Sequence record: NC_061447.1
DNA: 64,000 nucleotides
Direction: 5' to 3' (one strand)
In this document: positions 5,574-32,988 of the stretch, piece after piece
How positions within the stretch are numbered: position 1 is the stretch's first letter
How the letters are laid out: each line of letters begins with the position of its first letter
Program-made: the position numbers and the translations under genes
Notes under the pieces: model-generated
Databases searched by the model: none
What the model saw: the letters and a program-made list of their open reading frames with translations, nothing else
Told to the model about the DNA's origin: nothing

Positions 5574-7517
5574 ATGGGTATTCAGGTCGGGCGTCGTCAA
5601 TTGGGCGCTGCACCCTCGGAGCCTGCAAAGAAGAAAACAAACAATTCTCTCGGCGCAGCCTCTTTACCGCGCGAGATAGGCAAAGCAATCCGCAGTGAGA
5701 GTTCGCGTCGTCACACTGACTTCGTATCTCAATCTGCGGGTGGCGCAGGGATGGCTGCCGGTAATATGCAAATTGGTACCGTGCCTCTTGATATCGACTT
5801 AGAGCCGATGATGGAAGGTATGGACTATGATGCTGACGACCGACAGCTATTCAACGTCTACCGCGATATGTATCACTTCGATCCAATCTGCGGCTCTTAT
5901 GTGGACTTGTTCTCAACGCTACCATTCTCCGATGTGAGTTTCAGTGGCGCGAAAGACAGTGTGCTTGAGCCGTATTACGAAGTGAACGAACGTCTGTCAC
6001 TGACCACCAGTATGCCGAACATCACAACCGATATTCAGGTTACTGGCGCGTTCGTTGGCAGTATGATCTACAACAAAGACCGTAAGAAGTTCATCGACCT
6101 GATGACGCACCGTTACGACAATATCGACGTGACAGCTCTGCCGTTTATCAGTCAAGACCCGATGTTCGAACTGCGCATTCCTCAGTACGTGAAGTCTGCT
6201 TTCGCCAAAGAAGGTAAACGTATTGACGCGCTGAAAAAAGAACTGGGCCCTGCGTTCGTTGATAAGTTGATGAACGACACGACGATGGAACTCGACCCCA
6301 TCGGCACAATCTACATTCCACGTAAGACGTTCAGCTTTGGCGAAGGTATCTCGGTGTTACGCCGTGTGCTGCCAATCTGGCTGATCGAAAAGAACCTGTA
6401 TCGTGGTACGCTGATTGAGTCGGGCCGTCGTCAACGCGGTATCTTACACGCCCAGCTGGGTGATGGTGATCAGTGGGAACCGTCGCAAGAAGAAATGGAC
6501 TTTATGACCGACCTTCTTCTGTCTGCGGATAGTGACCCGATTGGATCTATCATTACCACACGCTTGGGTGTGAACATCAGCGAGTTCCGTCAAGGCGGTG
6601 ACTTCTGGAAGATTACGGATATCTGGGACCAGACTGCTCAATTCAAAATGCGAGCTATGGGTATCAGTGAAGCGTTCCTCAGCGGTGAAGCGAACTATGA
6701 CTCTGGCGCTGCTGGCCTGACGATTTTCGTTGAAGCGATGCGAGCGTTCCGTGATCATCTGACGCGTAAAGTCTACTACGAGAAAGTCTTCCCTCTTATC
6801 AGTATGATGAACGGCCTTGCTGTTCAGCGTAACGGTAAGATCATCAAGAAGAACAATCTCATGGACGGCGGCTTGACCGAAGTAATGTACAAACTGAATG
6901 ACGGTAGCAAACTGTTTATTCCGAACGTGCATTGGTCTAAGCAACTGCGTCCTGACGTTGACCAAGCGATGATGGAAAACTTACGTGCGATGACTGAGCT
7001 GGGCGTTCCAGTTCCGTTACGTGCTATCGCTGCGGCTGGCGGGTACAACTTCGACCAGATTCTTATGGATCAGGATGAAGACCTCGCTATGCGTCGTAAG
7101 CTGATGGCCTATCGCAAACGTATGTCTGAAATCGACGCTGAGTTCGCACCTCCTGAGCCGGGTGCTGGTGGTGACGGTGACAGCTTTAGTTCTGTCAGTA
7201 GCATGTCTGGTGACCGTGACCTGCAACGTCGCCGTCGTCATATCGCTGGTATCGGCCTGTCATCTGCTGTTCTTGGTGGTGAGAAGCGTAAGCTGCTTAA
7301 CCGCGACTTCGGTGAACGTTCTGAAATCTTTGAACTGTCCAAGACAGGTAAGAAGAAACACGTCTTCCGTCAGTCTGTGGCGAACAGCCGTGCTAACGAC
7401 CAAATCTGGAAAGCTGCTAAGAACTATGAAGCCAACAAAACGATGCCTCTCGATAACGGCAAGGTTTCATTCCAGCCTACACCGGGTGAGCTTCGTGCAA
7501 TGTCGAGACTCCGTTAA
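5574..7517 (+). CDS. portal protein
   Basis: 647 aa downstream of TerL; YRDMYHFDPICGSYVD resembles the N-terminal motif of myovirus portals; synteny. Confidence 0.7.
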   Translation: MGIQVGRRQLGAAPSEPAKKKTNNSLGAASLPREIGKAIRSESSRRHTDFVSQSAGGAGMAAGNMQIGTVPLDIDLEPMMEGMDYDADDRQLFNVYRDMYHFDPICGSYVDLFSTLPFSDVSFSGAKDSVLEPYYEVNERLSLTTSMPNITTDIQVTGAFVGSMIYNKDRKKFIDLMTHRYDNIDVTALPFISQDPMFELRIPQYVKSAFAKEGKRIDALKKELGPAFVDKLMNDTTMELDPIGTIYIPRKTFSFGEGISVLRRVLPIWLIEKNLYRGTLIESGRRQRGILHAQLGDGDQWEPSQEEMDFMTDLLLSADSDPIGSIITTRLGVNISEFRQGGDFWKITDIWDQTAQFKMRAMGISEAFLSGEANYDSGAAGLTIFVEAMRAFRDHLTRKVYYEKVFPLISMMNGLAVQRNGKIIKKNNLMDGGLTEVMYKLNDGSKLFIPNVHWSKQLRPDVDQAMMENLRAMTELGVPVPLRAIAAAGGYNFDQILMDQDEDLAMRRKLMAYRKRMSEIDAEFAPPEPGAGGDGDSFSSVSSMSGDRDLQRRRRHIAGIGLSSAVLGGEKRKLLNRDFGERSEIFELSKTGKKKHVFRQSVANSRANDQIWKAAKNYEANKTMPLDNGKVSFQPTPGELRAMSRLR

Positions 7518-12190: not shown

Positions 12191-12574
12191 ATGGATAAGA
12201 AAATAATCAGTTTTCTTGTGGACAGTCTAAGCAGTGATGAAAGGGAACCTGCGGAGAAGTATGTGGGTAAAACTGCGGGACAAATAGCCAAGGAAGAGAC
12301 AGGCATTGCGTTTATCGTCAACAACGCATTCGCCATGAATCATCTTCTTTGGTTGCCTGATATGGAGCATGATTGGTTCACACCAGTCGAAGCCCTGATT
12401 CATTTATCAAGCGGTCTTATTGGTCATGTCGGCGATGTGCCTGTTTACAGCGATTGGTATTACGGTAGCCCGAGTGACCGTCAGCGGCCGTGTGATAAAA
12501 TAGCTCGCGTGGGCGTCGTCGATATTGCGGCCAATCAAATTTCTTTGCTGACTGTCGAACAATTTGCTCGCTAA
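12191..12574 (+). CDS. hypothetical protein
   Basis: AAGGA SD, 127 aa. Confidence 0.65.
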   Translation: MDKKIISFLVDSLSSDEREPAEKYVGKTAGQIAKEETGIAFIVNNAFAMNHLLWLPDMEHDWFTPVEALIHLSSGLIGHVGDVPVYSDWYYGSPSDRQRPCDKIARVGVVDIAANQISLLTVEQFAR

Positions 12575-12615: not shown

Positions 12616-13386
12616 ATGAGCAACGTTGATAAAACAATGCCGGAAGGTCGCTGGGAGTTCAATGAGCCAGTAGCTTCTGTGTTCGATAACATGCTGCAAA
12701 ACTCAATCCCATCGTATGACCGTATGCGTGACCTGACGTACCGTCTTGGTCGCCAGTTCGTAACACCTGGCTCGGCCATTGTCGATCTTGGCGCATCACT
12801 CGGTCGTGCTGTCGAACCGTTCTGTGCAGAGTTCGGCGAGTACCTGTATCTTCACGCTGCTGATCGTCCTGAGCCAGACCGTGAAGTAGGTAACCTGTAC
12901 TGCTGCTACGAAGTCGCGCCTGCGATGCTTGAGCGTCTGCGTGAAAACCCTGTGCTGAAAACGGCTAAAGCGAAGATCAGTAGTGAGTCGCTGGTGGAAG
13001 TAGACACGTTCCGCTTCGACGAGCAGGTTGAGTGCTCACTGATTCTGTCTGTGCTTACTCTACAGTTCACGCCGATTGAACACCGTCAGCACATCCTGGA
13101 GAAAGTGTACGACTCGTTGCAGAAAGGCGGCGCGTTTATTCTGGTTGAGAAAGTGTTGGGTGATGACAACTTCCTCGACCGTCTGCTGGTAGACACCTAC
13201 TACGGCATGAAAGGCGATAACGGCTACTCGCAAGAATCTATTGCGGCTAAGCGTAAGTCCCTCGAAGGCGTACTGGTGCCTGTGAAAGCTGCATGGAACG
13301 AAGAACTGCTGCGTAAAGCTGGCTTCGACCGTGTAGAGTGTTTCTACCGCGACCTGAACTTTGCTGGATGGATCGCAGTCAAATAA
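12616..13386 (+). CDS. cmoA: carboxy-S-adenosyl-L-methionine synthase (CmoA-like)
   Basis: WEFNEPVASVFDNMLQNSIPSY, DLGASLG, LTLQF, GGAFILVEK, NGYSQESIAAKRKSLE, AGF...LNF are colinear with E. coli CmoA, including the KR Arg. Confidence 0.88.
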   Translation: MSNVDKTMPEGRWEFNEPVASVFDNMLQNSIPSYDRMRDLTYRLGRQFVTPGSAIVDLGASLGRAVEPFCAEFGEYLYLHAADRPEPDREVGNLYCCYEVAPAMLERLRENPVLKTAKAKISSESLVEVDTFRFDEQVECSLILSVLTLQFTPIEHRQHILEKVYDSLQKGGAFILVEKVLGDDNFLDRLLVDTYYGMKGDNGYSQESIAAKRKSLEGVLVPVKAAWNEELLRKAGFDRVECFYRDLNFAGWIAVK

Positions 13387-13397
13387 GGTAAAACGAA

Positions 13398-14453
13398 ATG
13401 AGCGTAAGTGGTGATATTTATAACATCCCTCAACCGTTCGCCATGTATTGTGGCAACTGTGAAACTCGTGCTCAGGCAAAAGTTGCCTCAGGCACAATCG
13501 AATGGGCGGCAGAGAAAGTCTGCTGCGTTGTTGCCGACGATAACGGCCTGTTCCCTGATGTGCCTCACGTCAACATCGCAAGCGTCCATGCCACAGATGC
13601 ACGTACTCTGGTAATCGGCTGTGCACCGTTCGGCGGTAAGATTGACGAGCACATGGACCGCACTATTCGCAGTGCTATCTATCGTGGCATGAACGTCGCT
13701 GCCGCTATGCACAATCGTCTGGCTGATAATGCCGAGTACGTTGCGTTGGCCGAACAGTATAACGTCAAGCTGTATGACTTCCGCCACCGTCCTGATGCGT
13801 ACCCTCTAGGTACTGGCGAGAAGCGCAAAGGCATTCGTCTGCTAACTGTTGGCACCGATAGCTCCTGCGGTAAGAAGTTCACGACGTTGACTCTGTTTAA
13901 CGCGCTTAAGGCTCGTCATCCAGATACCGTATTCTGCTCTACTGGCCAGACTGGTTTTCTGATCAGTAACTGCGGCATCAACAACGATACGCTGGTGGCT
14001 GACTTCCTTGCAGGTGCTGCTGAGTCTTTATCTCCAGATGGTCCTGCTGATCGTGTGTATCTGATCGAAGGTCAGGGTGCTATTACTCACCCAGCGTATA
14101 CTGGCGGCAGCATGAGCCTGATTGCTGGCTCGCAGCCTGACTACTTCATCATGTGTCATGCGTGGGGCCGTAAGAACCAGCTCGGTGTTAAACGTGCGCC
14201 TGACCTGACATTCGAATTGACTGCTAACCTGGACGCAGCGGCCATTCACGGTCTTACTCCTGAGTATCTCGGTATCAGTGTCAATTTCTCTGAAAGCGAC
14301 CTGACTATCGAAGAACAAGACGATGCTATGCGCGAGATGGAGGACCTGTACTCGATGCCTGTGTTCGACCCATCGCGCGATCTGTCTTACGTTGCTGACA
14401 TTGCTGATCGACTTGAACGAGAGGCTATGTGCAGGAGCGAGTCCAATGGCTAA
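13398..14453 (+). CDS. DUF1611 family protein (DgcN-like, Rossmann plus P-loop)
   Basis: LLTVGTDSSCGKKFT, STGQTG, DFLAGAAE, IEGQGAITHPAY, GSQPD..IMCH. Confidence 0.85.
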   Translation: MSVSGDIYNIPQPFAMYCGNCETRAQAKVASGTIEWAAEKVCCVVADDNGLFPDVPHVNIASVHATDARTLVIGCAPFGGKIDEHMDRTIRSAIYRGMNVAAAMHNRLADNAEYVALAEQYNVKLYDFRHRPDAYPLGTGEKRKGIRLLTVGTDSSCGKKFTTLTLFNALKARHPDTVFCSTGQTGFLISNCGINNDTLVADFLAGAAESLSPDGPADRVYLIEGQGAITHPAYTGGSMSLIAGSQPDYFIMCHAWGRKNQLGVKRAPDLTFELTANLDAAAIHGLTPEYLGISVNFSESDLTIEEQDDAMREMEDLYSMPVFDPSRDLSYVADIADRLEREAMCRSESNG

Positions 14454-15315
14454 ACATCCTCTTCGCAAGCTGTTTGAACAGCACGTAAAGAAAGAGGTCA
14501 AAGCCAAAGAAGTGGCCGTTCTGCTTTCGAGCGGCCTCGACGGTTTGGTTAGCGCACTCGCCGCGCACGATCTCGGCATGAAGGTCCATGCCTTTACTTT
14601 CCAGATGGGCGACAACCAGAGCTTCGATAGCAAACACGCCGCAATCGTCGCACAGAAGATGGGCTGGGAGTTCACGCTCGTCAAAGTGCCTACGTCTGAC
14701 AGTGCTATCGCTCAGGGTTGGAAGACGCTACATAAAAAGTTCCGCTGCATTAAGAAGCGTGACTATGAGTGTGCGTACCCTATGGTGTATTGCTACAAGG
14801 CGATCAAAGAAGCTGGGTTTAAGTATGTGCTCAGTGGTCTGGTGGCCGACGGTTACTTCCTGTATAACCGCAATACGCACATTCAGAAAGTAAGTGGCCC
14901 GCACTCAGTCGCTGAAAAGTATCACGCGTACCGCACCGAATACTTCCGCCCGTGGATCAAAGACGGTAAGAAGTCTCTCGGTGTTGATGGGTATAACCCA
15001 AGCGGTATGCTGCAACACGAAATGCTGTGTGACCACTTCGGCCTCGTTCACGTTAACCCGTGGATGCAGCCGAAAGTATTTGATTACTTCATCAAGTACA
15101 CATGGCAGGAACTCAATCAGCCTAAGCAGAAACAACCTATTACAGAAGCATGGGCTGACCACATCGCTATTGTAGGGCATCGCCCACATCGCGGATATCA
15201 AACAGAAGCTGGAGTACCTGCGTACTTCGAACGCTTACTGGATAATCCTGAGATCAACTTCAACGGGCGCAAGCGTATCATGGATGTTGCCCGTGATTGG
15301 TCAACGAGGACGTAA
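14446..15315 (+). CDS. asparagine-synthetase-like ATP-dependent amide ligase (synthetase domain only)
   Basis: PP-loop VLLSSGLDG, AFTF, VLSGLVADGYF (cf. SGEGADE); no N-terminal Ntn glutaminase domain. Confidence 0.78.
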   Translation: MAKHPLRKLFEQHVKKEVKAKEVAVLLSSGLDGLVSALAAHDLGMKVHAFTFQMGDNQSFDSKHAAIVAQKMGWEFTLVKVPTSDSAIAQGWKTLHKKFRCIKKRDYECAYPMVYCYKAIKEAGFKYVLSGLVADGYFLYNRNTHIQKVSGPHSVAEKYHAYRTEYFRPWIKDGKKSLGVDGYNPSGMLQHEMLCDHFGLVHVNPWMQPKVFDYFIKYTWQELNQPKQKQPITEAWADHIAIVGHRPHRGYQTEAGVPAYFERLLDNPEINFNGRKRIMDVARDWSTRT

Positions 15316-15316
15316 C

Positions 15317-15937
15317 ATGTTAGTACACATCATTGACGGTGGCGTAGGCTGCAATTATGTAGCTGAGAAATTGCGTGAGTCGAATATCAACTGTCGCACT
15401 CATGCTCCAAACAATCCGCGCATTCGCGCTCAGTATGCTCCTTATCCTTCACTGTCTATGGGCTTTGAGGCACAGGAGATCGAGAAACATATCGGTAACG
15501 TGCTGGGCACCTATCGCGGACTGTTCCTGATCAGTAGTTACGTCGGCTCTCTTGTTGCACGTAGCATGATTGATCAATGCGGCCAGAGCCATAACATCAT
15601 CTATTGTGATGACTTGCAGTGTGGCTCAACGCCTGTTGTTGCTTCCTCAATTTCTGTAAACATCTACAAGAAGCAACGGCAACTCGGACGCATCGCTGGG
15701 CGCATCAAACACTTCGACCTTGACCACGAATTTATTATCGCTGATAAGTCAGTGCGGTTCGCGTCAGGCTTGGAGTTTGATGAACGCGGCGCGCGTGAAG
15801 AACTGGACGATACGCCTAAGTTCTTATCGAGTCCGTCAATGATTGTTGCAGCACACAAACTCGGTGTGAAGCGCAGCATGTATCACAACTATGCAGGGTT
15901 GGTGCGAGAGTTCCTTGAAAAGCGCCAGCAGCAATAA
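15317..15937 (+). CDS. divergent Asp/Glu racemase (MurI)-like protein
   Basis: IIDGGVG (cf. VFDSGVG), APYPSLS (cf. FPYGEKS), LISSYVGS where MurI has VACNTAS; catalytic Cys residues not evident. Confidence 0.45.
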   Translation: MLVHIIDGGVGCNYVAEKLRESNINCRTHAPNNPRIRAQYAPYPSLSMGFEAQEIEKHIGNVLGTYRGLFLISSYVGSLVARSMIDQCGQSHNIIYCDDLQCGSTPVVASSISVNIYKKQRQLGRIAGRIKHFDLDHEFIIADKSVRFASGLEFDERGAREELDDTPKFLSSPSMIVAAHKLGVKRSMYHNYAGLVREFLEKRQQQ

Positions 15938-19216: not shown

Positions 19217-20059
19217 ATGACCGTAATCAGTCCAATCCGTTATCAGGGCAATAAGCGAAGCCTTATCCCTCTTATTCTTGAGCACACACCAAGCGTACAG
19301 GACTGTCCTCGTATGGTCGATGTGTTTGGTGGTAGTGCTACCGTCTGCGCTAACATGCCACAGAAGTTTCGCGTGTACAACGAGCTTAGTCCTCAGGTGT
19401 TTGAGATCGTTAAGATGCTGGTGGAACAAGACCCGAAGAAAACTCTCGGTCAAGTCAAGCGTCTGGTCAAACACTGGTGTCTGACAAACAGCAACGAAGC
19501 GAACTATGATGCGTTTCGAACTGTCGTCCAGAAGAAGCGTACACCGATACTACATTACGTTGCACACAGACACGCGCACTCGAACATGCTGCGCTTCAAC
19601 CAGCAAGGTGTGTATAACGTCGGCTTCGGTGATCGTGGCCTGATTGGAAAGTTCGACGAGCTGGAGCATGAACTCACTACCTTCCACAGTCACATGCAGG
19701 GTGTCCACCTGACGAACATGAAGTATGGTAAGTTGCTGAGTCGCTTAGGCCATCAACTGAACTGTAACACGTTCTGCTACTTCGACCCTCCATATCTGGC
19801 GAGCGGTGCAATGCAGTACGGCAAGTGGACGGAAACTAACGAGCGTAACCTGCTGGCCACTCTGGAGCAACTCAATCGTTTAGGCGTACCGTGGATGTTG
19901 AGCAACGTGACCGAGCACCGACACTTCTCAAACGATTTGTTGAAGCGTTGGTTAAAGAAACATGCAACAACCGTGCTGTACCCAAACAAAAGCTATGCGA
20001 TGAACAACGGCCAGAGTGGCTCGCATGGTACTGTTGAAATTCTGGCAATGAACTATTGA
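19217..20059 (+). CDS. dam: DNA adenine methyltransferase (Dam/D12 class)
   Basis: SPIRYQGNK, DVFGGSATV, YNEL, YFDPPY, WMLSN. Confidence 0.9.
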   Translation: MTVISPIRYQGNKRSLIPLILEHTPSVQDCPRMVDVFGGSATVCANMPQKFRVYNELSPQVFEIVKMLVEQDPKKTLGQVKRLVKHWCLTNSNEANYDAFRTVVQKKRTPILHYVAHRHAHSNMLRFNQQGVYNVGFGDRGLIGKFDELEHELTTFHSHMQGVHLTNMKYGKLLSRLGHQLNCNTFCYFDPPYLASGAMQYGKWTETNERNLLATLEQLNRLGVPWMLSNVTEHRHFSNDLLKRWLKKHATTVLYPNKSYAMNNGQSGSHGTVEILAMNY

Positions 20060-30145: not shown

Positions 30146-30856
30146 ATGGCAAAAACTGCTATCAAAGCAAAGGACGGGAAAAAGAAAAAGAATGACGGAC
30201 TAAAGTTTGAGTTGAATAAACTCAGCTCCGTCTCTCAGTTGAAGGGGGCTACGTACAACCCGCGTTTCATTACAGACAGTCGCCTGAAAGCACTCGAAGG
30301 TTCTTTGGGTAGCTTCGGCGACTTGTCTGGTATCGTGTTCAACAACAACATCAAATCTGGTGTGTTGATCTCTGGCCACCAGCGCCTGAAATCAATCGAA
30401 GGCTGGAAGACTCGTATCGAGATTCAGAAGTCTGTTGATAAGCACGGCACAATCGGCCTGGGTTACATTCACGCGACGCATCCAAAGAAAGCTGATAAAG
30501 TGATCAGCATTCCTCTGCGTGTCGTGAACTGGACCGATAAGAAAGCCGAGTACGCTGCGAACATCGCGGCAAACGCCCATGGCGGTGAGTTCGATAACAA
30601 GAAACTCGCCAAGCTGGTTGAACAACTCGACCTCAATACAATCAAGCCTCAACTGCTCGGTCTCGACCCGTTAGAAATTCGCGGTCTTCAAGCCAAGCTG
30701 AAAGTTCAGGCCGTTGTGCAGGACGAGAAACGTGCTGGCAAGACTACTGGCCAGATGAACGGTAGTACAGGCAAGTTCAACGAGTATAGCCCAGATGATG
30801 TGGGTGACGCTCTGAACTGCACCTGCCCGCGTTGTGGATTCAAGTTCGAGGGATAA
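30146..30856 (+). CDS. ParB/Srx-like N-terminal domain protein with CPRCG tail
   Basis: YNPR.I...L..SL..FG...IVFN...LISGHQRL...ANIAAN...GEFD; C-terminal CTCPRCGFKF. Confidence 0.8.
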   Translation: MAKTAIKAKDGKKKKNDGLKFELNKLSSVSQLKGATYNPRFITDSRLKALEGSLGSFGDLSGIVFNNNIKSGVLISGHQRLKSIEGWKTRIEIQKSVDKHGTIGLGYIHATHPKKADKVISIPLRVVNWTDKKAEYAANIAANAHGGEFDNKKLAKLVEQLDLNTIKPQLLGLDPLEIRGLQAKLKVQAVVQDEKRAGKTTGQMNGSTGKFNEYSPDDVGDALNCTCPRCGFKFEG

Positions 30857-30858
30857 TA

Positions 30859-32988
30859 ATGATCATCAAGCCGCCTACGATGAAGGAAATCAACAAGCTG
30901 GATAAACCCTGGCGTGGTATGAGTTTCTTCGCAGGTTGCGGTGGTTCTTCTACCGGTCACAAGATGGCCGGTATCAACATCGTGCTGAGTAACGAGTTTG
31001 TTGACTCGGCGCGTGAGTCGTATGAAGCAAACCACCCGACAACCAAAGTGCTGCCGCATGATATTCGTCGCTTAGACCCAGGCAAGCTGATGCGCTATGC
31101 TGGTCTGTCTAAAGGCGAATTGGATTTACTTGACGGTAGTCCTCCTTGCTTTACCGAAGACACTATCATTCATACAGCAGACGGCATGAAGTTCATCTCG
31201 GACATGAACGTCGGCGATAAAGCGATGACAAGCATCGGTCAGTATCTTCCTGTGTATGACACTATGGTTCGTCCGTATGTCGGTACTATGCACAAGATTG
31301 AAACTCTGATCAGTGCAAACAACGCAACGCCCGAGCATCCGTTCTTCATTCGTCGTCCGCTTGAGTCTGGTGGCTTCTCTGACCCGTTCTGGTGTGACGC
31401 TAAAGACGTGCAGGAAGGTGACCTGGTCGGTACTCCAAGAACTACTCCTGACATTGGTGCAGATGCAGTACACGCCCAGATGGAACAACTGCCGAAGTTG
31501 ATTCAGCAGTGGGTGAGCATCCCTGAGTTCTGGTGGATGGTAGGTCACTGGTGTGATCGCGGTTCAATCGAGACTGTTAGTGGTGTAGAAGTTGTTAGCT
31601 TCGAATCGCATACCAGTCTGGAAAACGCGATGATTGAGCAGGCGTTTGATGCGCTTAAACTCAGTAGCCTGAACCGTATCGACCGCATGACAGCACAACG
31701 TAAAACGTTCCGTACTGTTATCGACGCCGAGCTGGTGCAGTTCCTGCGCCGCTTCGTCAGTGCTGGCAACAACACGTTCTCTCGTCGTCTACCTGCTCTG
31801 GTATTCCACCTGAGCACCGAGCTGAAACGTCAATTCATTCTCGGCTGCGCTGGGCATGACTACGTTACAGCGATGGGCACTGGCCTTGCTATCACGTCTT
31901 CAAGCAAGCGCTTCCTGTTAGAGATGAACTACCTGTGCTGTTCTGCGTTCAACCGTCCGCTATTCGACGGAATGATTTGGGGCGACGTGTACTTCGGTAG
32001 CGCGTTAACTCCAAAAGAGCGTAACAGTGCGCGTGAACATCTCGGCTATTTGTTCCTGCAGGAAGAGCACAACTTCTTCCACGAGTTCGATAAAGAAGAC
32101 CCGAACCTGTGGGTACAAGTGATTGAGAACCTTGCGTATCAGGCAACTTGTGACGTCTATAACTTCTCGGTTGAAGTTGACGAAACCTACGTGGCTAATG
32201 GTACTGTGGTGCACAACTGCAAAGGCTTCTCGACTGCTGGCGTGAAAGAAGAAGGCTGGGGCAAAGAAGTTAAGTACAGCGATAACAAGTATCAGCAGGT
32301 TGATGACCTGTTCGATCAGTATTGCCGTATGCTGGAAGGCATGATGCCGAAAGTGTTCACTGCGGAGAACGTTAGTGGTCTTGTTAAGGGCGCTTCGAAA
32401 GGTTACTTCATCGAGATCATGAAAGAGTTCGACAGGATTGGGTATTACGTCCGAGCGCCGCTGCTTAACGCTGCCTGGCTCGGTGTGCCTCAGTCCCGTG
32501 AGCGTATCATCTTCATGGGTGTACGCAAAGACGTAGCACACGCTCTCGGTCACAAGAGCATTAAGACCGCTGTGCCTGATGTTGTGCCTTGTGACACAAT
32601 GGCATTCCTTGCCGATGCGCTGCCGCATATTCAACGGTATAAGTCCACGAAGAAAGATATCATTACGTATCTGCCTGCGATGAACGGACCGATGCCGACT
32701 ATCACTGCGGCCGATGCGATAGCCTATGAAACTGCGCGGTTCTCGTCTGCTGGTTTCATCGAAGATAACAAAGGCCATCGCCGTAAACTGACCATCGACG
32801 AACTCAAAGTTATTTCTGGTCTGCCCTCTGACTATAAGCTGGTGGGCAAATTCGAAGAACAATGGGAGCGTCTCGGTCGTATCTGTGTGCCAGCAATGAC
32901 ACACGCTGCATCCAAAGCGCTTATCGAACACGTCTTACTTCCGTACGCGAAGAAGCGTAAGAAGAAGCCTGGCGATATCTTCAAGTAA
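30859..32988 (+). CDS. C5-cytosine DNA methyltransferase homolog with intein; motif X GN->GR (candidate carboxymethyltransferase)
   Basis: Motif I FFAGCGG, IV GSPP/C (split by intein), VI AENV, VIII QSRERIIF, X WERLGRICVP. Confidence 0.9.
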   Translation: MIIKPPTMKEINKLDKPWRGMSFFAGCGGSSTGHKMAGINIVLSNEFVDSARESYEANHPTTKVLPHDIRRLDPGKLMRYAGLSKGELDLLDGSPPCFTEDTIIHTADGMKFISDMNVGDKAMTSIGQYLPVYDTMVRPYVGTMHKIETLISANNATPEHPFFIRRPLESGGFSDPFWCDAKDVQEGDLVGTPRTTPDIGADAVHAQMEQLPKLIQQWVSIPEFWWMVGHWCDRGSIETVSGVEVVSFESHTSLENAMIEQAFDALKLSSLNRIDRMTAQRKTFRTVIDAELVQFLRRFVSAGNNTFSRRLPALVFHLSTELKRQFILGCAGHDYVTAMGTGLAITSSSKRFLLEMNYLCCSAFNRPLFDGMIWGDVYFGSALTPKERNSAREHLGYLFLQEEHNFFHEFDKEDPNLWVQVIENLAYQATCDVYNFSVEVDETYVANGTVVHNCKGFSTAGVKEEGWGKEVKYSDNKYQQVDDLFDQYCRMLEGMMPKVFTAENVSGLVKGASKGYFIEIMKEFDRIGYYVRAPLLNAAWLGVPQSRERIIFMGVRKDVAHALGHKSIKTAVPDVVPCDTMAFLADALPHIQRYKSTKKDIITYLPAMNGPMPTITAADAIAYETARFSSAGFIEDNKGHRRKLTIDELKVISGLPSDYKLVGKFEEQWERLGRICVPAMTHAASKALIEHVLLPYAKKRKKKPGDIFK
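31147..32217 (+). mobile_element. intein (357 aa) with degenerate LAGLIDADG region, inserted before the catalytic Cys
   Basis: CFTEDT..., block B ATPEHP, block F/G VYNFSVEVDETYVANGTVVHN then Cys+1; LAGLIDADG-like boxes (MVGHWCDRGS, FILGCAGHD) lack canonical acidic residues. Confidence 0.9.

Follow-up and report, generated by a model that had tools for sequence, protein, structure and literature searches.

The window analysed here, a stretch of 64,000 nucleotides (nt) from sequence record NC_061447.1, belongs to the Erwinia amylovora jumbo phage pEa_SNUABM_33 (263 kb), whose near relatives are Dickeya phage AD1 and Erwinia phage Alexandra. At positions 13398-14453 (+) it holds a stop-free open reading frame (ORF) of 351 amino acids (aa), which encodes a protein of the DUF1611 family related to the bacterial enzyme DgcN. 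This gene very probably belongs to the CmoA/CmoX/CmoY pathway of DNA cytosine hypermodification; its step and its substrate in the pathway are what we infer below. The function we favour, with a probability of roughly 0.4, is an acyl-CoA-dependent N-acyl capping of a D-amino-acid side chain carried by 5-carboxymethylcytosine (5cxmC), as judged from sequence. The earlier note on this gene had placed it in a phage modification context, and it is indeed preceded by a CmoA homologue and followed by a translationally coupled CmoY-type ligase, while a CmoX-type methyltransferase with the 'GR' motif is encoded elsewhere in the window. The same note supposed that such a role would be new for the DUF1611 family, and no description of one was found in the literature searched.

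In phage S-B43, CmoA makes carboxy-S-adenosylmethionine (carboxy-SAM, Cx-SAM), CmoX (SPPC motif, Arg350) produces 5cxmC, and CmoY ligates glycine at the expense of ATP (Yang et al. 2025, Nat Commun, PMC12783734). CmoX Arg350 binds the Cx-SAM carboxylate, and ParBc proteins accompany many CmoX genes (PMC12783734). The reference ions given there are m/z 286.1 for 5cxmdC and 343.1 for its glycine amide, and the S-B43 system was also reconstituted in E. coli. DUF1611, racemases and Erwinia phages are unmentioned in that paper (PMC12783734), and the literature search turned up no subsequent publication about CmoX or CmoY. From the sequence comparison, the window carries this system. It shares with S-B43 a CmoA, a CmoX with SPPC and the Cx-SAM arginine, a ParB-like neighbour, and an AsnB-type ligase that is 33% identical to the glycine ligase SpCmoY over aa 44-287 and similar to it in length (289 against 271 aa). 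However, S-B43 has neither DUF1611 nor a racemase, whereas the window has DUF1611; the window ligase falls in a separate clade whose members are always accompanied by DUF1611; the window CmoX is split by an intein; and the Cmo genes of the window lie at two sites 17 kb apart.

The DUF1611 gene is closely packed with its neighbours. It is preceded by the Shine-Dalgarno sequence AAGG, lies 11 nt after the CmoA homologue and overlaps the start of the ligase gene by 8 nt: the ligase start (ATG 14446, as annotated in AD1) is preceded by AGGAG and stands upstream of the DUF1611 stop codon. The TIGR00740 score of the CmoA homologue falls under the bacterial equivalog cut-off; in all related loci the CmoA homologues adjoin the C5-methyltransferase, the ligase and DUF1611. 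A complex prediction for DUF1611 with the ligase returned a score of 0.00, which is no answer and is counted neither way.

This arrangement is conserved well beyond the window. Tracing homologues of the DUF1611 protein (100% to 36% identity) back to the contigs that carry them yielded 20 distinct Cmo contexts; the loci considered are the best-scoring ones, near-duplicates included. All 20 adjoin CmoA and/or a C5-methyltransferase, and 19 of them, on phage-like contigs, keep the order DUF1611-(racemase)-ligase. The twentieth (L033) carries a chorismate mutase, a CmoA-like gene and DUF1611, and the contig end cuts the next gene. Wherever the downstream gene can be read, DUF1611 is directly upstream of the ligase, often with the racemase between them. 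The 20 Cmo-context proteins form a single clade (SH-aLRT, a likelihood-ratio branch support, 99; stem of 0.81 substitutions per site) apart from the 80 nearest cellular homologues, whose loci contain no Cmo genes (0/80). Two deep DUF1611 subclades match two ligase types when the trees are compared. The trees were obtained by a quick search, with a distant outgroup as the root of the DUF1611 tree and midpoint rooting for the ligase tree, and the backbone of the cellular group is not resolved: a phage clade sister to the cellular proteins and one nested among them both fit. The outgroup (L025-L031, match 6001-6783; 29% identity) comes from prophage-sized IMG/VR contigs without Cmo genes, and its members are probably cellular genes beside prophages.

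A tblastn search of 50,697 phage records detected DUF1611 in 34, every one of them in the Erwinia/Dickeya jumbo-phage group, and the same 34 records, and no others, have a type-1 ligase at at least 84% identity. DUF1611-less sister jumbo phages (Y3, Yoloswag, pEa_SNUABM_5 and others) carry in the same slot a ligase that is 22-29% identical. A strict tie between DUF1611 and one ligase subtype fails outside the Erwinia phages, where distant loci pair DUF1611 with a Y3-like ligase; locus L193, considered as a type-1 ligase without DUF1611, proved to be a distant relative (3e-10). A CmoA relative occurs in at least 394 stretches of IMG/VR. Among the 80 best CmoA loci, DUF1611 is present in 7, each of which comes from an Erwinia/Dickeya-type jumbo phage; single-sequence phmmer annotation may overlook divergent ligases or methyltransferases in the loci classed as 'CmoA only'. 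A profile-guided IMG/VR scan recovered 10 loci of the DUF1611-Cmo type, on contigs of 216-268 kb. DUF1611 is thus a minority accessory of the Cmo system and not a core part. The earlier note took absence from most cmoA phages as a sign against its proposal. Such absence is what is found, but it leaves an accessory tailoring role unaffected since tailoring partners vary, the Y3-like phages having a 2-oxoglutarate (2OG)-Fe(II) oxygenase instead.

These data also bear on the possibility that the protein has nothing to do with DNA and acetylates free D-Glu or D-Ala, draining peptidoglycan precursors or recycling D-amino acids, its place in the cassette being fortuitous. Such an enzyme would keep the known bacterial role of the family, with its D-amino-acid catabolic neighbours, and its catalytic core is conserved. 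However, DUF1611 remains next to the ligase in phage lineages as divergent as 36% identity, and the two reading frames overlap, the Cmo-context proteins are one clade co-diversifying with the ligase, no phage contig of the clade was found without Cmo genes, and the phage genome has no DgcA-type partner. We consider this the least probable of the explanations weighed here.

The relationship of the protein to DUF1611 is clear from several approaches. Both Pfam domains of the family score far over their gathering cut-offs: the C-terminal P-loop domain PF07755 at 5.8e-46 (156.9 bits against 25) and PF17396 (DUF1611_N) at 7.5e-18 (65.1 bits against 22.6). In a scan of the phage's own genome the DUF1611 match reaches 2.2e-47. 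The signature set read from the letters alone in the earlier note is complete, with GTDSSCGKKFT at aa 152-162, TGQTG at 182-186, EGQGAITHPAY at 224-234 and GSQPD at 244-248. The closest PDB sequence is 7XRJ (1.6e-51, aa 10-328). This entry, entitled 'N-acetyltransferase DgcN-25328', is also the top Foldseek match (TM-score 0.79/0.83) of an AlphaFold2 (AF2) model with a mean local confidence (pLDDT) of 93.3. The two-domain fold is common to 7XRJ, 2G0T and 2OBN (TM 0.77-0.83 for all three).

DgcN is recorded as a D-glutamate N-acetyltransferase (EC 2.3.1.312), which agrees both with the title of 7XRJ and with the earlier note. That bacterial DUF1611 genes sit beside enolase-family epimerases is likewise confirmed: in 56 of the 80 nearest cellular loci, the next gene downstream, on the same strand, is of the MR_MLE type. 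Other cellular neighbours are class IV (D-amino-acid) aminotransferase, M19 dipeptidase and beta-lactamase-fold genes. The DgcA partner (MR_MLE, an enolase-superfamily N-acetyl-D-Glu racemase) is found neither in the whole phage genome nor in the Cmo-context loci, and the window protein obtains 280.5 bits with the DgcN equivalog profile NCBIfam NF041892, whose cut-off of 480 is not reached. Failure to reach the DgcN cut-off together with the lack of a DgcA partner suggests a neofunctionalised relative rather than DgcN itself. The two proteins share the fold and the core motifs, and 54 alignment positions, every motif included, are conserved in the phage clade and in the 80 cellular homologues alike. 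These include G152-T153-D154, G158-K159, T162, T182-GQTG186, D197/D202/F203/E209, E224-GQG227, H231, Q246/D248 and C253/H254/R258. These residues are presumed to be catalytic or cofactor-binding; the simplest interpretation is that the catalytic core is unchanged, and the same type of chemistry is likely. The two proteins differ in that the window protein belongs to a separate, long-stemmed phage clade, which is relaxed at ten positions where conservation among the cellular proteins is 90% or more (L15, G43, W86, G174, G191, H219, W220, T284, N285 and G329). Phage-specific residues are N195, N196, L204, F323 and the V-to-G change at 237. The contexts also differ: D-Glu catabolism for DgcN, DNA hypermodification for the phage protein.

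A second enzyme related to D-amino acids occurs in sister cassettes. In L006/7, L008, L009/10, L011, L015, L019-22 and L032, a gene of 300-327 aa with matches to Ala_racemase_N (4e-14), Ala_racemase_C and TIGR00492 alr lies between DUF1611 and the ligase. Its pyridoxal-phosphate (PLP)-lysine motif IPVVKGxFYGxG and second-base tyrosine (GYG) are invariant in five aligned examples. From the trees, this racemase appears ancestral in the type-1 clade and lost from the lineage of the window, and the window phage genome has no Alr-type gene. Its position in the sister cassettes lends independent support to a link with D-amino acids. A D-configured appendage is the most economical reading of a D-amino-acid acyltransferase family, a racemase and an amide ligase occurring together. 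The earlier note had proposed Glu or D-Glu as the appendage: the D-amino-acid part of this proposal gains from the racemases, but Glu or D-Glu is not supported, as the racemase type predicted from sequence (alanine/serine, not glutamate) argues against D-Glu in the racemase-bearing cassettes. A normal-length alanine racemase is also found 2-3 kb upstream of cellular DUF1611 genes in Vibrio (L041, L045, L091, L096) and Woeseiaceae (L056), so the pairing of racemase and DUF1611 is not unique to phages.

We propose that phages captured a gene of the DgcN/DUF1611 family once and built it into Cmo cytosine hypermodification as an accessory tailoring enzyme. CmoA would provide carboxy-SAM, and the intein-bearing CmoX homologue would generate 5cxmC in the phage DNA. 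The CmoY-type ligase, co-translated with DUF1611, would adenylate the 5cxmC carboxyl and join an amine. DUF1611 would acylate the alpha-amino group of a D-amino acid, with acetyl-CoA or a different acyl-CoA as the donor. Its target would be the amino-acid unit destined for 5cxmC, either once this has been ligated to the DNA or while it is still the free amine donor. The appendage would need a second amino group, as in a D-diamino acid or the D-centre of meso-diaminopimelate, and the predicted end product is the N-acyl-D-amino-acid amide of 5cxmC. The D-isomer would come from the Alr-type racemase in the sister phages and from host D-centres in the window phage. Capping is favoured because it keeps the chemistry of the family, because the ligase matches the self-sufficient SpCmoY in length, and because related ligases are paired with a 2OG-Fe(II) oxygenase and not with DUF1611 in Y3-like phages. 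A precedent for the terminal N-acetylation of an aminated base reportedly exists: Lee and co-workers are said to have described, in PNAS in 2018, 5-acetylaminomethyl-dU in phage PaMx11.

Several points weigh against capping. The appendage would have to carry a second free amino group, yet no gene of the loci suggests a diamino acid. The closest relatives of the racemases are of the alanine/serine type, and the racemase is lost in the window lineage, which fits host D-Ala or D-Glu, neither of which has a second amine. The ten relaxed positions indicate that the substrate pocket has probably changed. Moreover, a DUF1611 diverging faster than the ligase would fit amino-acid specificity being held by DUF1611 and not by the ligase. 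A bolder reading, which we hold less likely than not, is that these jumbo phages attach a D-amino acid to DNA through a DNA-acting N-acyltransferase, DUF1611, that would either couple a D-amino acid from the racemase or the host to the activated 5-carboxymethyl group, or acylate a DNA-tethered D-amino acid. If true, this would be the first nucleobase bearing a D-amino acid, and DUF1611 the first non-GNAT, P-loop-fold acyltransferase acting on DNA. These phages may carry on their DNA a hitherto undescribed group derived from a D-amino acid.

The divergence in question is visible even between close relatives. Compared with AD1, the ligase is 100% identical at the aa level (synonymous divergence, pS, 0.08) and CmoA 98.8% (pS 0.16), against 89.2% for DUF1611 (core pS 0.37). 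The DUF1611 differences cluster in the 3' two-thirds of the gene (13816-14453), especially in the C-terminal tail (aa 301-351; pS 0.82 and nonsynonymous divergence, pN, 0.24), while a pN/pS of about 0.08 over aa 1-300 indicates purifying selection. Compared with pEa_23, DUF1611 is 58% identical and the ligase 85.5%. The better reading is that DUF1611 is functional and constrained and that its alleles are swapped by recombination independently of the ligase. Positive selection as the source of the divergence is ruled out by the raised synonymous divergence (0.37 against 0.08-0.16 in the flanks) and the core pN/pS.

An alternative which would account for DUF1611 diverging and recombining much more than the ligase is an acyl relay. 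The ligase would only activate the 5cxmC carboxyl, as adenylate or perhaps as CoA thioester, and DUF1611 would form the amide with the D-amino acid to give a 5cxmC-D-Ala or 5cxmC-D-Glu amide. This would be the reaction of its family, N-acylation of a D-amino acid, with the substituted acetyl group on the DNA taking the place of acetyl-CoA. An amino-acid amide of 5cxmC is formally an N-(arylacetyl)-amino acid and hence an analogue of the DgcN product. This scheme suits bacterial D-Ala or D-Glu with an Alr-type racemase, accounts for the racemase being dispensable in the lineage of the window, and suits the translational coupling of DUF1611 with the ligase. The replacement of W86 and W220 by small aliphatic residues and of V237 by glycine in the phage clade could, to judge from the alignment, widen an acyl pocket. 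However, SpCmoY, 33% identical and of similar length, finishes the ligation alone (PMC12783734). Ligases related to those of the DUF1611-positive phages also work without DUF1611 in Y3-like phages. We know of no precedent for a DNA-linked acyl-CoA, nor for an adenylate being handed over from an AsnB-type enzyme, and on balance such a relay, although the main rival of capping, is unlikely.

The P-loop of the C-terminal domain raises a further alternative. As the earlier note had recognised, this domain resembles that of dethiobiotin synthetase (DTBS): behind the DUF1611 structures, Foldseek lists dethiobiotin synthetase, CobB and the ParA/Soj P-loops, matched through the C-domain only and weakly (TM 0.3-0.38), and GTDSSCGKKFT follows the DTBS-like pattern GTDxxxGK. 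DUF1611 could thus be a second, ATP-dependent ligase in the manner of BioD or CobB/CobQ, in which the P-loop would phosphorylate the carboxyl of a 5cxmC-bound amino acid and a D-amino acid would be added to give a dipeptide-like side chain. The C-domain matches the folds of dethiobiotin synthetase and of cobyrinic acid a,c-diamide synthase, neither the P-loop nor the acidic residues vary, and the racemase next door would provide the incoming D-residue. However, the DTBS-type matches are weak, and the Walker A motif G-x5-G-K-K has a lysine after the GK in place of the usual Mg2+-ligating Ser/Thr, the nearest threonine (T162) lying three residues past K159. Moreover, the only characterised member of the family, with which the core is fully common, is recorded as an acetyl-CoA N-acetyltransferase, that is, an acyl-CoA transferase and unlike DTBS and CobB/CobQ. 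We regard a second ligase as very unlikely.

Four different cassettes fill the slot delimited by CmoA and the conserved 206-aa gene in the phage group of the window (Table 1). The Y3-type cassette occupies this slot in closely related jumbo phages and likewise combines a ligase with one tailoring enzyme, but the ligase is of type 2 (about 26% identical) and an oxygenase replaces DUF1611. This 2OG-Fe(II) oxygenase follows the different ligase type at L017:3595-4233 (Erwinia phage Y3) and at L131:8857-9483. Its presence in DUF1611-less relatives hints at a tailoring reaction of another kind, such as hydroxylation of the appendage. Many cassettes also include, translationally coupled upstream of DUF1611, a gene for a 394-420-aa protein with weak Glycos_transf_1 similarity (glycosyltransferase-B-like, GT-B-like) of which the window has no copy. 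A homology search with this protein returned only the query, and a model built from three homologues (pLDDT 44) is too poor for use. The coupling of this gene, together with the pocket positions that differ from cellular DgcN, would be compatible with DUF1611 being a pathway member of other chemistry. Its substrate might be the amine donor or an additional decoration, such as an amino sugar from the GT-B-like protein, or it might use a non-acetyl acyl-CoA such as succinyl- or malonyl-CoA. But the window phage, lacking the GT-B-like gene, keeps DUF1611 and the ligase, which implies that DUF1611 must have a substrate that does not depend on it, and this possibility appears decidedly unlikely.

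The 5cxmC pathway became known only in 2025, glycine being its sole known appendage, and the authors of that work asked which other amines are used. What is new here is a phylogenetically distinct accessory module, mostly of jumbo phages, in which a DgcN-like enzyme always accompanies the ligase and to which an Alr-type racemase and a GT-B-like protein may be added. It leads to a prediction that can be tested, a new DNA side chain that would have the D configuration and might be N-acylated. It also provides DUF1611, a poorly understood family, with a second biological setting, and the enzymes could serve for programmable DNA functionalisation. The Erwinia phage cassettes A to D constitute a natural series in which each extra gene should add one mass step.

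Table 1. Genes of the putative DNA modification pathway in the window, cassette variants of the phage group and accessory genes (L-numbers designate loci outside the window)
Feature	Location	Strand	Description
DUF1611/DgcN-like protein	13398..14453	+	351 aa; N-terminal Rossmann-like and C-terminal DTBS-like P-loop domains
CmoA homologue (carboxy-SAM synthase)	12616..13386	+	256 aa; TIGR00740 3.5e-42; phrog_4752 6.6e-80
CmoY-type AMP-forming amide ligase (asparagine-synthetase C-domain/PP-loop)	14446..15315	+	289 aa; Asn_synthase 1.6e-13
Conserved 206-aa gene directly after the ligase	15317..15937	+	In all cassette variants including DUF1611-less Y3; pathway membership uncertain
ParB-like protein, directly upstream of the CmoX candidate	30146..30856	+	phrog_620 3.3e-32
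CmoX-type DNA cytosine C5-carboxymethyltransferase candidate, intein-interrupted	30859..32988	+	8YF3 (SpCmoX) best PDB match, 6e-54
Cassette A	window, AD1		After CmoA: DUF1611, ligase
Cassette B	pEa_21		After CmoA: 420 aa, DUF1611, ligase
Cassette C	pEa_23		After CmoA: 420 aa, DUF1611, racemase, ligase
Cassette D	Y3		After CmoA: other ligase, 2OG-Fe(II) oxygenase
GT-B-like accessory gene	L015:2034-3296; L016:2382-3644; L008:6770-7990; L009:6782-7978; L012:713-1897		

Two further enzyme genes adjoin CmoA in other phage contigs: chorismate mutase at L014:4622-5089, L033:1522-1803 and L131:6662-6928, and 3-deoxy-D-arabino-heptulosonate 7-phosphate (DAHP) synthase at L009:10943-11806 and L010:4509-5372. 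No chorismate mutase is encoded in the window phage genome. These enzymes would boost prephenate, the co-substrate of CmoA, whose availability is an open question in the 2025 paper (PMC12783734). On the other side of the cassette, the 206-aa protein gave a weak alpha/beta-hydrolase (Ser_hydrolase) lead in the ESM Atlas; this identity was not confirmed, as the protein has no Pfam hit and no clean GxSxG motif.

The CmoX candidate contains GSPPC, and Arg350 of SpCmoX (GRM) is aligned with GRI; its PHROG alignment begins at residue 10 of the ORF. Exactly at motif IV sits an intein of about 357 aa (about nt 31147-32217, with Hint and intein domains), with the junctions ...GSPP|CFTEDT...VVHN|CKGFS. 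The catalytic cysteine of CmoX is thus the +1 residue of the intein, and CmoX activity must depend on protein splicing.

Two further genes of the window may be mentioned. A 127-aa ORF (12191-12574) lies between a 253-aa gene and CmoA; AD1 lacks it (383-nt indel), while pEa_SNUABM_21 and Y3 have it. A D12-class (Dam-like) N6-adenine DNA methyltransferase is encoded at 19217-20059, and the phage therefore probably has more than one DNA modification.

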